NCBI RefSeq assembly: GCF_006345805.1
Contig: NC_043020.1
Location: 16,740,001 to 16,804,000, forward strand
Length of the DNA stretch: 64,000 nucleotides
Direction of reading: 5' to 3'
Source: Octopus sinensis
Taxonomy: Eukaryota
Below the pieces are notes generated by a model. The model saw only the letters and a list, made by a program, of their open reading frames with translations. It did not search any database and was not told the DNA's origin. Numbering within the stretch: the stretch's first letter is position 1; the number at the start of each line of letters is the position of its first letter. Positions 749 to 60,400 of this stretch are shown here, in pieces. A program made the position numbers and the translations under genes.

Positions 749-791
749 TCTCTGATGAAGGGATATCCATATCCCAGAAACAGCTGTAAGA
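749..791 (+). ncRNA. Minimal type I hammerhead ribozyme motif (core intact, short stem I)
   Basis: UCU-CUGAUGA-A-GGGAUAU/cc/AUAUCCC-A-GAAA-C-AGCU-G-UA|AGA. Stem III has 2 bp with the palindromic loop AGCU; stem I has only 3 bp. Confidence 0.7.
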
Positions 792-796
792 CTATA

Positions 797-1212
797 CTCT
801 TTACTCTTTTACTGGTTTCAGTCATTTGACTGCGGCCATGCTGAAGCACCGCCTTTAGTCGAGCAAATCGACCCCAGGACTTATTCTTTGTAAGCCCAGT
901 ACTTATTCTATCGGTCTCTTTTGCCGAACCGCTAAGTGACAGGGACGTAAACACACAAGCATTGGTTGTCAAGCAATGCTAGGAGGACAGACACAGACAC
1001 ACACAAACACACACACACACACACACATATATATATATATACATATATACGACAGGCTTCTTTCAGTTTCCATCTACCAAATCCACTCACAAGGCATTGG
1101 TCGGCCCGGGGCTACAGCAGAAGACACTTGCCCAAGATGCCACGCAGTGGGACTGAACCTGGAACCATGTGGTTGGTTAGCAAGCTACTTACCACACAGC
1201 CACTCCTGCGCC
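797..1212 (-). mobile_element. SINE family B (tRNA-like head, CORE-like GCACCTTGGGCAAGTGTCTT segment, internal microsatellite, (AAAGAGT)n tail)
   Basis: Close match to the copies at 11607, 25748, 31581, 55583 and 58556; CTATA is duplicated on both flanks. Confidence 0.85.
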
Positions 1213-1939
1213 TATATCTATATCTCCTTATAAATGTCCTGAAAACTCTGGCTGTGTTATCTCTTTTGTCTAATATATATATATGTATATGTATATGTAT
1301 ATACATGTATATACATATATATATATATATAATAAAGCTTATATATAAAGAACGTGAAATTCACGAATTGACAAACACGGAAAAACGGACAGTAATTCAG
1401 AGCCTTCATTCTTCAGTCAGAAACCGATTCATCATGGCAAATTTTGGCTGTTTAATTCTGAGATTTGCTCCAAAAAGGCCAGCCCCAAGGCAAAAGCTAA
1501 GCTATGGGCATTAGATTTGCTTGGTAGAAGGAAAGAATGTGACAGCCGAGACGAACAGGAAAACAAGAGACGAAGATAAAATTTACAGTAACGAATAAAA
1601 ACAGGAATGATACGGGGGCGTCATACGACTTTGAGACAAAATGAGACAAAACAATTGATCAGCAGCGTGGGAAGTGGTTACCTTTTCGGTAGAGAAGACG
1701 TGTTGTACGAACGGCTGCCAGCAGTGGAATGGCTTAGCAGTAGTAGGTTTGCAAGAAGGTGAGAGAGAAAGAGAGAGGGGGGATTACACACACACACACA
1801 CATATATATAATATATATATATATACACACACATATATATACATATATATATATATATATACACACACACACACACACATATATACATATATATATATAC
1901 ACACACACACACACACACATATATATATATATATATATA

Positions 1940-3209
1940 CAGGGGTTGGACAAAATAATGAAAACACCTTAAAATTTCAAACAAATTTATTTTAATATGG
2001 GGTAGGACCGCCTTTGGTTGTAATTACAGCTTGAATTCTACGAGGTATGGACTCGTATAAAGTTTGAATTGTTTCCAAAGGAATTTTTGTCCATTCTTCA
2101 GCTAAAACAGTCTCCAATTCTTGTAGTGATGATGGTGGAGGATATATCTACTCATTACTTGTTTTTCTAAAATGTACTGTAAATGTTCAAAAATATTGAG
2201 ATCTGGGGGTCTATGGTGGCCAGATAAGATGTTGAACTTCACTAGAATTTTCCTCATGCCATTCAGTAACAACTTTGGCTGTGTGAATTGGTGCATCATC
2301 ATCCTGAAAGATTCCGTTTCCCTCCAGAAACAGTTCTGCAACCATAGGATGAATTTGATCAGATAAAATGCTTAAATAGTCTTGACTGTGAATTCTGCCA
2401 TGAAGGGAAACCATTGGGCCGGCAGATTTCCAAGATATAGCCCCCCCCCCCCCAGATCATCACAGATCTTCCTCCATGTTTAACAGTTGGAAGAAGGTAG
2501 TCTGGGTCAAATGCTTCTTTTGGCTGTCTCCACACGTATACTCAGCTGGTGGTCAGAAATAGGGTAAAAGATAGCTTGTCCAAGAAAATAGCATTCTTCC
2601 ACTGCTCTAGGGACCAATTCTGTAGGTTTTTACTCCACTCTAAATTCTTTGCAACATTTGTTTTTGAAAGTAGTAGTTTTCTGATTGCAGCCCTCCTGTG
2701 AAATCTGGCTTTATGCAGCTCCCAGAGAAAATTTTTTGTGGAAACTGGCTTTCTCTAGGTGGTTTCTCTAAATTCTGGCTTTCTCTAAGCTCTGCAGTAA
2801 TTTTGGGAGCTGCACTTTTGTGATCTTTTCTAACAATTTGCATAAAAGTCTGACAGTCCCTATCTCAAAGTTTGGGTTTTCTTCCAGAGTTTTGTTACAA
2901 CAAGGAGCTTTTTCCCTCTTTCTGAAAGGCTGTCATTACTTTCGAGACAGTATTTATTGATACACCAAGCACTTAGGCTGTTTTTATTACACTAGCACCT
3001 CTTTGAAAGTCTGATAGATCCTTCGTTTTAATGAATTTTAATTACCTTTTTCTGATGATGTCTGAAAAGAAACAGCAAAACATATTAAGCAACACTAATA
3101 ATAAATCAAAAAACATAAAAATAAACAAGCTTTTTACAGTTCTGTAGATATTTCAAAATTATGATGCTATGACACTAGGAGGTGTTTCCATTATTTTGTC
3201 TGACCCTTG
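1940..3209 (-). mobile_element. Decayed Tc1-type (DD34E) DNA transposon, full length between TIRs
   Basis: TIRs CAGGGGTTGGACAAAATAATGAAAACACCT and AGGTGTTTCCATTATTTTGTCTGACCCTTG, flanked by TA. Minus-strand fragments read FQDDDAPIHTAKVV, HLIWPP and PDLNIFEHL; frameshifted. Confidence 0.9.
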
Positions 3210-3482
3210 TATGTATATATATATGTATATATATACACACGCACACATACACATATACATATGAACCCTGAAGCAGTTCTCTCCCCTAAAAGGGAATCTT
3301 TACTCTCTCCTTTATTTCTTAGTAAACTCTCTCTCTCCCTCACACCAAAAACATCTGTAGGTGGCAGCCCCAACAGTCCACAGTTAAATTTCCCAAGCTT
3401 ATATATGTGTGTGTGTATGTGTACATAAGTATATATATGTGTCTGTTGTGTGTGCATGTGTATGTATGTATATATATATATA

Positions 3483-58309: not shown

Positions 58310-58500
58310 GTATAATGAAAAAAATCAAGGTATAAATGCCAAAATAATTTAATCATAAAAAACATTTTAGGACCCAAGTCACTGGGTATTGACTCGTCAT
58401 CACGCTGATGACAGGTCAATACTCAGAAACACAGGTCCAAAAATGTTTTTTATGATTAAATTATTTTAGAATTTTCTACCTTGACTTTTTTCCTTATGTA
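58310..58500. repeat. Head-to-head ~92-bp inverted repeat between (TA)n tracts, each arm a hammerhead-plus-tail unit
   Basis: GTCATCA-cgc-TGATGAC centre; both arms share AAAATAATTTAATCATAAAAAACATTTT; the left copy is decayed. Confidence 0.88.
58404..58438 (+). ncRNA. Minimal hammerhead motif (core intact, stem I lost at the inversion junction)
   Basis: G-CUGAUGA-C-AGGU/caau/ACUC-A-GAAA-C-ACAG-G-UC|C; same family as 60248-60290. Confidence 0.6.
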
Positions 58501-58555
58501 TATATATATATATGTGTGTGTGTGTATATGTATATATATATATATGTGTGTGTGT

Positions 58556-58943
58556 GTGGCTGTGTGGTAAGTAGCTTGTTTACCAACCACATGGTTCCGG
58601 GTTCAGTCCCACTGCGTGGCACCTTAGGCAAGTGTCTTCTACTATAGCCTTGGGCCGACCAAAGCCTTGTGAGTGGATTTGGTAGACGGAAACTGAAAGA
58701 AGCGCGTTGTATATATGTATATATATATGTGTGCATGTATGTTTGTATGTCTGTGTTTGTCCCCCCACCATCGCTTGACAACCAATGCTGGTATGTTTAT
58801 GTCCCCATCACTTAGCGGTTCGGCAAAAGAGACCGATAGAATAAGTACTGGGCTTACAAAGAATAAGTCCTGGGGTCGAGTTGCTTGATTAAAAGCGGTG
58901 CTCCAGCATGGCCGCAGTCAAATGACTGAAACAAGTAAAAGAG
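58556..58943 (+). mobile_element. SINE family B
   Basis: Matches the family B consensus; the 5' end merges into (TG)n. Confidence 0.85.
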
Positions 58944-60080
58944 AGAAAGAGAGATATGTATGTATATATATATATATATATATGTATATACGTATATATA
59001 TATGTATGTGTGTGTGTGTATATATAGATATATATATATATGTATATACGTATATATATGTGTGTGTGTGTATATATATATATATATATATATATATAGA
59101 CATATATATATGTATTCATATGTGTATATATATGTGTGTGTGTGTATATGTATACATATATATATAAAAGAGTAAAGAGTATATATATAGACATATGTAT
59201 TTATGTATATATATATAGACATATATATATGTATTCATATGTGTGTGTGTATATATATATATATATATATATATATATATATATATATATATATAGACAT
59301 ATGTATTTATGCATATATATATATATGGACATATATATGTGTGTATTTATGGGTATATATACACGGGCGTGAATGATAGTGTATAGAAGAACATATTGGT
59401 TTAATGCATGAAAGTACTAGTTCAATCAGAACGAACATTTAATATTCTATCATTTCATTATATTATATTATTACAAGATTGTAAATAAAACGTGAAAAGA
59501 GACAAAGTTAGAATTCCTTAGATTAATATATATGTTTGTGTGTATGTGTATTTATATATATACACACATAAATATATATGTATATACACATACTTACATA
59601 TTGTATATTTCAATAGAATATTTATCAAAATTTATAAAGAAGTAAGCATACGTAACTTATTGGAAACTTGGTATGGAAATGATCTGAATTATGCAGAAAA
59701 ATCCTTTGTACTTAGTTAATCAGTTCCTATCATAAAAAATCTGTAAAGTAATATAATATAATATTTAAAAGGATTTATTCGGATAACTCCCATAGATATT
59801 ATTGCCATAATAGATATTTGAAAGATATTTAGAAACAAAATATATGTCTAAAAATAAACGTCTGTCATTTGTTTTGCTACTGAAATATAAATGAATATTT
59901 AAAATTAAGAAAAATACAGTGTTTGCTCTTTCAAGTTGAAAGAATATAAACTATAAGCCATACAGCTGACATTTAAAACTAAATGGAAAGATAAATGTGG
60001 TTTTTGTTTGTTTTGTGGTACAAGCACATGTGAGTAATAATAAATCTGTGAACGAGATATAAACAGTAACTGTACGACAA

Positions 60081-60400
60081 TGTGAGGTATATTTGCCATC
60101 TCAATAGGGCTAAACACTAAGGGTGGGTGTTACTGTAGCTTGTAGCCCCAGGAGAACATCGTCTCCAGCTGGCTTTAGGCACACTTTCTGTGCCCTTATG
60201 GTATTTGCAAAGGGAGGTCACCCTTCCCTCGTCAACCTAAGTGATATGCATGGACTGCAGTTTCTAGGTTTTGACCTGTCATCAGCGTACGACAATCACC
60301 GGTTTTCGAAAACCGGTGATTGTCGTACGCTGGGGCTACAAGCTACAGTAACACTCACCCCTAGTGGTTAGCCCTATTGAGATGGCAAGTATACCTCACA
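60081..60400. mobile_element. Fold-back mini-element: 70-bp inverted repeats enclosing a hammerhead and a perfect 50-bp palindrome
   Basis: Arms 60081-60150 and 60331-60400 differ at 4 of 70 positions; palindrome at 60283-60332. Confidence 0.92.
60248..60290 (-). ncRNA. Minimal type I hammerhead ribozyme (GUC cleavage site)
   Basis: GUACG-CUGAUGA-C-AGGU/caaa/ACCU-A-GAAA-C-UGCA-G-UC|CAUGC; palindromic stem III loop UGCA; stem I has 4 of 5 pairs. Confidence 0.75.

Follow-up and report, generated by a model that had tools for sequence, protein, structure and literature searches.

Penelope-like elements (PLEs) leave insertions that are often heavily 5' truncated, in which an inverted truncated copy abuts the 5' end and inverted repeats flank the element (Craig et al. 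2021, PMC8557442). Partial tandems, a hammerhead ribozyme (HHR) near the 3' end, a bias toward (TA)n targets, and a tail of 30 to 40 bp have also been described (PMC8557442; Evgen'ev and Arkhipova 2005, cited there). "Dual min-HHRs" on opposite strands, approximately 100 to 700 bp apart, are probably tied to truncated PLEs, and the G10.1-C11.1 pair is highly conserved in PLE min-HHRs (Cervera and de la Pena 2014, PMC4209133). A PLE protein studied in purified form acts on both strands of DNA, cutting and extending them, and initiates reverse transcription internally (PMC11167929). In octopus genomes, PLEs are numerous and have been active recently (PMC13282606, PMC8967140). Type I HHRs are also found in non-LTR retrozymes, which are direct tandem repeats of 150 to 450 bp with one ribozyme in each (Cervera and de la Pena 2020, PMC7229834). 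In a preprint from 2026, it is argued that PLE pLTRs gave rise to the retrozymes of animals, and the PLE and retrozyme readings therefore overlap.

Here, we analyze HHR motifs in a 64-kb stretch of Octopus sinensis DNA (the window, meaning the whole stretch), which contains an exon of the Lgl/tomosyn WD40 family.

HHR motifs in the window

The pattern CTGANGA-N(4-30)-GAAA occurs 13 times in the whole 64-kb window, compared to an expectation of 1.67. A full type I HHR descriptor, which demands helices II and III and treats helix I as optional, gave 8 loose matches; 200 dinucleotide shuffles yielded 0.225 on average, and the reversed sequence yielded none. With a stricter type I descriptor, 5 perfect-core matches were obtained versus 0 in the reversed sequence, and matches with one mismatch numbered 16 to 17 versus 1 in the control. 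The excess also holds against a control that preserves repeats and palindromes. As a positive control, the descriptor was applied to three real PLE loci and gave exactly one sense min-HHR just 3' of the RT ORF in all three. Rfam hammerhead covariance models gave no match at the gathering score and none at E<=10 in stretches of 90 to 150 nt around the four best candidates; the min-HHRs of the control PLEs were also missed by these models.

Across the descriptor matches, helix II comprises 4 to 7 bp and helix III 2 to 4 bp. Helix I pairing was found at 27 of 48 positions versus 19.4 in shifted registers (P=0.019), the correct register being the best, and helix I is strong only in 51745. The conserved core that was tested (C3-U4-G5-A6-N7-G8-A9, G12-A13-A14, A15.1-U16.1, and H17) is intact in 752(+), 22552(+), 51745(+), and 60285(-), all with acceptable helices, and in the doubtful match at 46646, while 3915(-), 7820(-), and 22187(-) each carry one core substitution. 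The motifs and the units in which they lie are as follows.

629..800, plus strand: twin unit with an intact-core min-HHR at 752-788(+), CUGAUGA-A-GGGAUA/UAUCCC-A-GAAA-C[AGCU]G-U-A, separated by a hairpin (669-748) from a degenerate inverted partner at 629-668(-) that was absent from the earlier list; a SINE adjoins the unit from ~796.
3842..4830, minus strand: old head-to-head pair, arms 62% identical, ~500 bp between the copies; minus copy 3842-4075 with an HHR relic at 3915-3880 (GUGAUGA, C3->G), plus copy 4570-4830 with a decayed HHR at ~4745-4800 (this partner, ~4745-4830(+), was absent from the earlier list).
7728..7955, no single strand: twin foldback, symmetric about 7844.5, arms 91% identical; HHR-like motif 7820-7768(-) with CAAA replacing GAAA (G12->C) in both arms, mirrored on the plus strand at ~7869-7921; the right end adjoins (GA)3(TA)n.
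21968..22646, no single strand: complex tandem/inverted unit; on the minus strand (22522->21968), a direct repeat of 300-370 nt is present in ~1.6 units and includes an HHR relic (22187-22151, G12->A), and an inverted plus copy, 22530-22646, has an intact-core HHR at 22552-22588; the two HHRs differ by one compensatory helix II change (A-U versus G-C).
51564..51947, plus strand: asymmetric twin, arms ~96% identical; long plus copy ~51700-51947 and inverted tail-only copy 51564-51700; best-formed HHR at 51745-51792 (CUGACGA, extended helix II, helix III AUCG/CGAU), with a helix I of 6+3 bp extending to 51804; the left end adjoins (TA)9, and an 11-nt duplication is seen at the right end.
58312..58497, no single strand: symmetric twin foldback within a (TA)n tract, centre 58403.5; both arms start at the HHR core, the right arm (CUGAUGA...GAAAC) with core intact and helix II broken, the left arm reading GUGAUGA...GUGAC.
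60075..60405, minus strand: asymmetric twin; long minus copy (60329->60075) comprising, in order, a perfect palindrome (60283-60332), a min-HHR at 60285-60253, CUGAUGA-C-AGGU/ACCU-A-GAAA-C[UGCA]G-U-C, and a tail of ~175 nt; its inverted plus copy (60330-60405) is limited to the final 75 nt, with 93% identity; the HHR core and that of 58405 share 82% identity.
27660..27703, plus strand: doubtful solitary HHR-like motif (earlier site 27655) with no foldback, no helix I, and a helix II of only 3 bp including a G-U pair; probably chance or decay.
46646..46690, plus strand: doubtful solitary perfect-core match, helix II AU/GU only, no foldback, adjoining a SINE; absent from the earlier list.

An earlier note on this DNA had reported nine HHR motifs and one half motif. 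Four of these (749, 22548, 51738, and 60248) correspond to the intact cores named above, and four (3877(-), 7760(-), 22147(-), and 58404) are decayed, each having a single core substitution or a disrupted helix; the site at 27655 is doubtful. The half motif, at 10867, was rejected as an HHR, as this foldback contains only 'GAAACACGUC' and has no CUGANGA box. The stem III strings listed at that time (AGCU, UGCA, UCGGUCCGA, and CUCAGAG) are all present, and we agree that the motifs are PLE-style minimal type I HHRs with a short palindromic helix III and belong to several unrelated sequence families.

Chance matches in AT-rich, hairpin-rich sequence would be one way to account for the motifs. The matches at 27660, 38105, 46284(-), and 46646 and several one-mismatch matches do look chance-like when taken individually, and the fact that no Rfam model matched is in line with this. 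However, the motif frequency (5 to 17 matches) is well above that in the shuffled and reversed controls (approximately 0 to 1), and the place and orientation of the motif are fixed within the foldbacks. For the motif set as a whole, the chance reading is already refuted, and we consider its probability negligible.

Architecture of the foldbacks

Self-alignment showed that all seven HHR units, which lie in introns of the gene, consist of two copies placed head-to-head, the left one on the minus strand and the right one on the plus strand, so the previously described order of inverted tail, HHR, and tail is confirmed. The 3' tails point outward and the 5'-truncated ends meet centrally; three units are perfectly symmetric, and the asymmetry of the arms varies among the units. 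The density is about one unit per 8 to 9 kb (one per 7 kb had been estimated first). A (TA)>=5 run lies within 10 nt of 5 of 13 unit ends versus 11.8% expected (P=0.013), a modest enrichment.

The units had also been taken for TIR-bounded MITEs. MITEs or foldback DNA transposons that have long inverted repeats at their termini and harbor an HHR internally by chance would explain the foldback appearance and the length of 170 to 390 bp. Moreover, only ~7 of the ~12 foldbacks in the window carry an HHR, indicating that elements lacking an HHR form foldbacks here as well; the ~5 without one include 50356-50617, 10699-10950, and 37984-38155, and these three may be genuine MITEs. In the HHR units, however, the arms, instead of being short terminal repeats accompanied by target-site duplications, are whole inverted copies that reach the unit centre with variable asymmetry, and no target-site duplications were found at the boundaries of the four units inspected (51745, 58405, 60285, and 7760). 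At least five unrelated families share one orientation of the HHR relative to the centre, and we know of no use for an HHR in a cut-and-paste element. We therefore abandon the classification as TIR-bounded MITEs and regard a DNA transposon origin of the HHR units as highly improbable.

Retrozyme-like features

Non-LTR retrozymes, short non-autonomous tandem repeats with a type I HHR whose RNA is self-cleaved, circularized, and reinserted, are another candidate source. The complex at 21968..22646 has an HHR-bearing direct repeat of 300-370 nt (~1.6 units), a length within the unit range of 150 to 450 bp (PMC7229834), and the HHR at 51745 is of a more canonical type, its helix I having 6 bp and its helix III being stable. 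On the other hand, six of the seven units contain inverted copies only, with no direct tandem, and none has two intact HHRs on the same strand, which would be required for excision of a unit; the strand with the direct repeat in the 21968..22646 complex has a single HHR, and this is mutated. Most of the motifs follow the minimal style of PLEs and not the canonical loop1-loop2 type. An origin from retrozymes as such is thus unlikely, although not to the degree of the MITE reading.

A more specific version of this idea concerns the asymmetric units, 51745 and 60285. These could be self-propagating "fold-back retrozymes," short non-autonomous RNAs with the HHR in the apical loop of a long terminal hairpin, but we consider this a long shot. 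If it were true, the sense HHR of 51745, predicted to be competent as a monomer, could cut the pre-mRNA, and the near-perfect duplexes of 75 to 135 bp could be ADAR or Dicer substrates in an animal group with heavy RNA editing.

Probable origin by PLE retrotransposition

We consider it likely that the units are decaying, heavily 5'-truncated insertions made by the PLE retrotransposition machinery, and their source may have been autonomous PLEs or short PLE-mobilized RNAs. Because the arms are whole inverted copies placed head-to-head, as published for 5'-truncated PLEs, the units are more likely to be PLE integration products than special "mini-elements" with their own termini. The earlier proposal of non-autonomous PLE or retrozyme derivatives is thus retained with respect to PLE or retrozyme origin, which is the best reading, and not with respect to a separate mini-element class.

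In the mechanism that we propose, the pseudo-LTR of the PLE template RNA would include a minimal type I HHR close to the 3' end. Reverse transcription would begin near this end and mostly abort early, so that only the last 100 to 350 nt (the tail, with or without the HHR) would be inserted. Integration would often add a second, inverted 5'-truncated copy abutting the first, presumably through nicking and extension of both target strands by the PLE enzyme. Two abutting inverted copies would therefore form a foldback in which the 3' tails face outward and the truncation points meet centrally. If both copies reached the HHR, two diverging HHRs would result, whereas if only one did, the product would be an inverted tail followed by the HHR and the tail. 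The ribozymes would serve the RNA of the element itself and not the host. In the three perfectly symmetric units, snap-back synthesis rather than two independent primings may have been responsible.

A partial direct tandem resembling a pseudo-LTR is found only in the 21968..22646 unit (~1.6 units). A tblastn search with the Poseidon_Ac ORF revealed no PLE coding remnant in the window (best E=5.3); truncated PLE copies are not expected to retain an ORF. The 30-40-bp PLE tail was not recognized in the units, judged from the copies in the window alone.

Predicted folding and the host gene

Whole units are predicted to form very long duplexes, with energies of -86 to -230 kcal/mol and z scores of -10 to -29. 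The predicted HHR fold of 51745 has an energy of -16.4 kcal/mol compared to -19.1 for the MFE structure (a gap of 2.7), while the corresponding values are -4.3 and -8.8 for 752 and +1.8 and -9.9 for 60285. The 51745 HHR lies in the apical, unpaired part of the predicted fold of its unit. Most of the ribozymes in the window are mutated, lack the dimer partner that they need, or are locked in a duplex with the antisense copy; based on these predictions, only 51745 could plausibly still fold and cut as a monomer.

Four units, including 51745, are sense to the host gene. This raises the possibility that intronic ribozymes or long dsRNA hairpins have been selected by the host for regulation of a neuronal gene, through pre-mRNA cleavage or as ADAR substrates, and the predicted duplexes and the apical position and small energy gap of 51745 would be in agreement. 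Nevertheless, half of the HHR cores bear inactivating substitutions, the twin partners decay independently, and no such HHR motifs were found in contigs from other species that contain the orthologous exon. We consider selection by the host very improbable, even more so than the MITE reading.

Comparison with known systems

Our results indicate that the window most likely holds an ordinary, known kind of element, a PLE footprint, and not a new type of mobile element. They leave the understanding of HHRs or PLEs unchanged, adding one more animal genome in which PLE-type HHRs are scattered as truncated relics, and provide a worked example of PLE twin insertions that can be mistaken for TIR-bounded MITEs or miRNA-like hairpins. 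When repeats are annotated, such units should be assigned to PLE fragments, whose ribozymes Rfam will not flag. Possible biological interest is limited to the intact sense HHR at 51745, predicted to be monomer competent, and to the very long intronic RNA duplexes.

In L1 twin priming, both target strands are primed, resulting in two 5'-truncated pieces, one of them inverted. The units described here likewise resemble an inverted pair of 5'-truncated pieces, but the enzyme differs (APE/RT in L1, GIY-YIG/RT in PLEs), and the L1 pieces are consecutive parts of one RNA, whereas both arms of the units in the window represent the same 3'-terminal segment. With metazoan retrozymes (PMC7229834), the units share short, AT-rich, non-coding sequence with a type I HHR, and the repeat length of the 21968..22646 complex fits; they differ in that the copies are inverted instead of direct tandem and in that a same-strand HHR pair is absent.

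Similarity to the PLE min-HHRs (PMC4209133) is seen in the type I topology, the CUGANGA/GAAA core, the extra base after A9, and the short helix I. The unpaired base between A9 and position 10.1 is A in 752 and 3915(-) and C in 60285(-) and 58405, and is ambiguous in 22552 and 51745, where an A could pair with U. Also shared is a short helix III with a palindromic loop 3, which implies action as a dimer and reads C[AGCU]G (752), C[UGCA]G (60285(-)), or UA[UGCA]UA (22552). The monomeric fold of such motifs is predicted to be unstable, but an intermolecular helix III of 8 bp is possible (-12 to -13 kcal/mol), with self-duplexes predicted at -11.5 to -13.1 kcal/mol. In place of the palindromic loop, 51745 has the AUCG/CGAU helix III, predicted to be monomer competent. 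In both cases, there are many heterogeneous families per genome, mostly isolated, with some opposite-strand pairs 100 to 700 bp apart. There are also differences. The G10.1-C11.1 pair, kept in all four control PLE HHRs, occurs in 752 and, when read in the bulged register, in 51745, but 60285(-), 58405, 22552, and 3915(-) have A-U or a mismatch (A.A or C.A) at this position. Several units have an unusual extra base 5' of G12, and helix II is often merely 4 to 5 bp. In the control PLE HHRs, helix III is ACGU and lacks a loop, whereas the HHRs in the window have palindromic loops of 4 nt, or a real helix III of 4 bp in the case of 51745.

Finally, although the fragments in the window are very short (170 to 680 bp) and without an ORF, they share with the PLE insertions described previously (PMC8557442) the 5' truncation, the abutting inverted copy, and the 3'-proximal HHR, and may also share the partial tandem (in the 21968..22646 unit) and the (TA)n bias.

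Hammerhead motifs in the window

The enrichment of hammerhead-ribozyme (HHR) motifs in the window is real. The pattern CTGANGA-N(4-30)-GAAA occurs 13 times versus 1.67 expected, and a type-I descriptor (core boxes, helix II of ≥3 bp, helix III of ≥2 bp closed by A15.1-U16.1, and H17 not G) gives 8 matches, compared with an average of 0.225 over 200 dinucleotide-shuffled sequences and none in the reversed sequence, a control that preserves all microsatellites and palindromes. With a stricter descriptor (helix II of ≥4 bp), perfect-core matches number 5 versus 0 in the control, and 16 to 17 versus 1 when one core mismatch is permitted. 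Chance matches are excluded as an explanation for the set as a whole.

Hammerhead sites, by window coordinate and strand
752 (+), intact core and acceptable helices, CUGAUGA-A-GGGAUA/UAUCCC-A-GAAA-C[AGCU]G-U-A
22552 (+), intact core and acceptable helices
51745 (+), intact core and acceptable helices, CUGACGA, helix I of 6+3 bp, extended helix II, helix III AUCG/CGAU
60285 (-), intact core and acceptable helices, CUGAUGA-C-AGGU/ACCU-A-GAAA-C[UGCA]G-U-C
3915 (-), relic, C3 to G
7820 (-), relic, G12 to C in both arms
22187 (-), relic, G12 to A
58405 (+), relic, helix II broken
27660, weak HHR-like motif
46646, doubtful descriptor match

The original list of nine HHR motifs and one half motif is sound for the most part and includes some over-calls. 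The motif at 27660 is weak, and at 10867 the CUGANGA box is absent. A host-selected function for the HHR units is contradicted by their cores, which are decaying independently. Two further descriptor matches were rejected as HHRs: 38105, a lone CTGATGA box within an unrelated foldback, and 46284(-), which lies inside a copy of a common SINE. Also rejected was a type-III reading of 60285 with a 44-nt palindrome as closed helix I, since H17 would then be a G and position 16.1 an A.

Rfam models gave no hammerhead match in the window, either at the gathering score or in E-value mode, and the E-value output was swamped by (TA/TG)n "mir-297"/miRNA noise. Real Penelope-like element (PLE) loci, retrieved with the published Poseidon_Ac ORF, served as positive controls; the RT-EN probe had 4,581 matches, the best 120 of which were from insects and lizards. 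At each of the three control loci, the descriptor gives exactly one sense-strand minimal type-I HHR (min-HHR), of the form CUGAnGA-U-[helix II]-GAAACGUC, directly 3' of the RT ORF, and it finds no match in the reversed loci. The Rfam models detected none of these control HHRs, and their negatives on the window candidates are therefore uninformative.

HHR units are head-to-head pairs of copies

Self-alignment demonstrates that every HHR unit consists of two head-to-head copies, the minus copy always to the left of the plus copy, with the 3' tails facing outward and the 5' ends meeting centrally. The foldback arrangement proposed previously is borne out.

Units carrying an HHR or relic
629(-)/752(+), symmetric twin, HHR or relic in both arms
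7820(-)/7869(+), symmetric twin, HHR or relic in both arms
58405 and its left arm, symmetric twin, HHR or relic in both arms
3915(-) with a decayed partner at ~4745-4830(+), pair ~500 bp apart
51745, asymmetric, a 240-nt plus copy with the HHR adjoining a 135-nt inverted tail-only copy, arms ~96% identical
60285, asymmetric, a 255-nt minus copy adjoining a 75-nt inverted tail-only copy
21968-22646, complex, ~1.6 minus-strand units of a 300- to 370-nt direct repeat, with an inverted plus copy as a cap

The earlier note had described these units as looking like MITEs bounded by terminal inverted repeats. A MITE reading fails on target-site duplications, none being visible at the four units inspected, and on the structure of the arms. 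The proposed adjacency to (TA)n is modest, with 5 of 13 unit ends lying ≤10 nt from a (TA)≥5 run, versus 11.8% expected (P = 0.013). Retrozymes, a rival source of the units, require direct tandems, and six of the seven units have none.

At the right end of the 51745 unit, positions 51927-51947 hold an 11-nt tandem duplication, TTTATAAGTT-G-TTTATAAGTT, which the left arm lacks and which may be related to the PLE "tail." A repeat found on both sides of this unit ("family X") was rejected as part of it and is the head of a tRNA-derived SINE.

Predicted folding of motifs and units

As RNA, whole units are predicted to form very stable hairpins, with energies between -67 and -230 kcal/mol and z-scores between -10 and -29. 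In the predicted folds, the HHR core of the symmetric twins is paired with its own antisense copy, and the cores of 51745 and 60285 lie in the apical, nonduplicated part. The hammerhead fold has independent support. In register, 27 of the 48 positions of helix I, which is outside the descriptor requirements, are paired, versus 19.4 when shifted (P = 0.019), and helix II shows one compensatory change, A-U to G-C, between 22187(-) and 22552(+). At 51745, an HHR-consistent fold lies ≤2.7 kcal/mol from the MFE; this HHR, which caps a 135-bp intronic hairpin, is intact, sense oriented, and by prediction monomer competent. As monomers, the 752 and 60285 motifs are computed to be unstable, and for each an 8-bp helix III between molecules (-12 to -13 kcal/mol) is possible, as expected for dimer-dependent min-HHRs. 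Cleavage is predicted after A788, A51792, and C60253.

A perfect 50-nt palindrome (60283-60332), found immediately 5' of the 60285 core and sharing the two bases at its start, would form in competition with helix I; snap-back during insertion may have produced it. A sub-threshold Rfam mir-9 match at 7805-7879(-) (49.5 bits; gathering score, 58.6), at the tip of the foldback formed by the 7728-7955 twin, is most likely a hairpin artifact and not a miRNA gene.

Host gene and other repeats

Host exons
23628-23696 (+)
31284-31477 (+), clean AG acceptor, GTAAGT donor

The only relatives were Logan ORFs (57 to 63% identity). P0124, a relative of the exon at 31284-31477, matches LLGL1 (E = 2.6e-9). 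Through P0124 only, sequence similarity places this exon, at the family level, in the Lgl/tomosyn family. Pfam gave no match for the exon-like and other window ORFs, and searching the PDB directly with the exon also returned none.

About five other foldbacks in the window are without an HHR. Those at 50356-50617, 10699-10950, and 37984-38155 have arms 80 to 87% identical and no hammerhead core, and they may represent either true MITEs or retroelement twins that have no HHR; weak Rfam mir-3149/mir-1277 matches at 50443-50522 are just the hairpin of the first. A three-copy family, 8747-8997(+), 9664-9905(-), and 9905-10116(+), has the CTGATGA box and is missing the GAAA box. Two of its members are paired head-to-head as a twin, the other (91% identical) is found beyond a 660-bp (TA)n-rich tract, and (TA)n adjoins all outer ends; the family might represent a PLE of the HHR-less or "half-core" kind, for example a Naiad. 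A large complex inverted structure at 12377-14826 (best arms 13501-13733 and 14234-14466, 86% complementary) occupies the stretch of the window with the highest GC content and has no HHR match. Much of the intron sequence consists of three abundant SINE families and microsatellites, with ~10% perfect simple repeats and 280 (TA)≥5 runs. By eye, an ORF at 2102-2341(-) looks like the C-terminal portion of a Tc1/mariner transposase; Pfam gave no match at E ≤ 0.1.

SINE families
802-1232 and 11 or more further places, ~400 nt
3483-3757 and at least 7 others, ~270 nt, GC rich
7348, 15726, 36045, 38220, 49002, 51243, and 52051(-), tRNA-derived head with A and B boxes

Comparison with known PLEs

Octopus genomes contain abundant PLEs that have been active recently (PMC13282606, PMC8967140). 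No PLE coding remnant was found in the window by tblastn, and exact look-up of spurious ORFs spanning the elements returned no further genomic copies. A homologue search with an 82-amino-acid ORF over the 60285 unit gave no candidates, and two exact-pattern scans of metagenome contigs, for a 51745 arm and the 58405/60285 HHR, were both empty.

PLE insertions carry a 30- to 40-bp tail, their HHRs sit in the pseudo-LTR close to the 3' terminus, and among their favored targets is (TA)n (Craig et al., PMC8557442). The purified PLE enzyme cuts and extends both target strands, and reverse transcription begins internally (PMC11167929); cleavage and extension of both strands could give rise to twin inverted copies. 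The derivation from PLEs or retrozymes suggested in the earlier note pointed in the right direction, and the MITE-like look that it ascribed to the elements is most likely the ordinary footprint of PLE integration. Metazoan PLE min-HHRs have a long helix II, a short helix I, a palindromic 15.2-16.2/loop 3, and an unpaired base between 9 and 10.1 together with a G10.1-C11.1 pair; their activity is low, and dimers are the probable active form (Cervera and de la Peña 2014, PMC4209133). In contrast to these, the window motifs mostly lack the G10.1-C11.1 pair; several have an extra base before G12. An integration footprint of this sort has already been described for PLEs in other animals.
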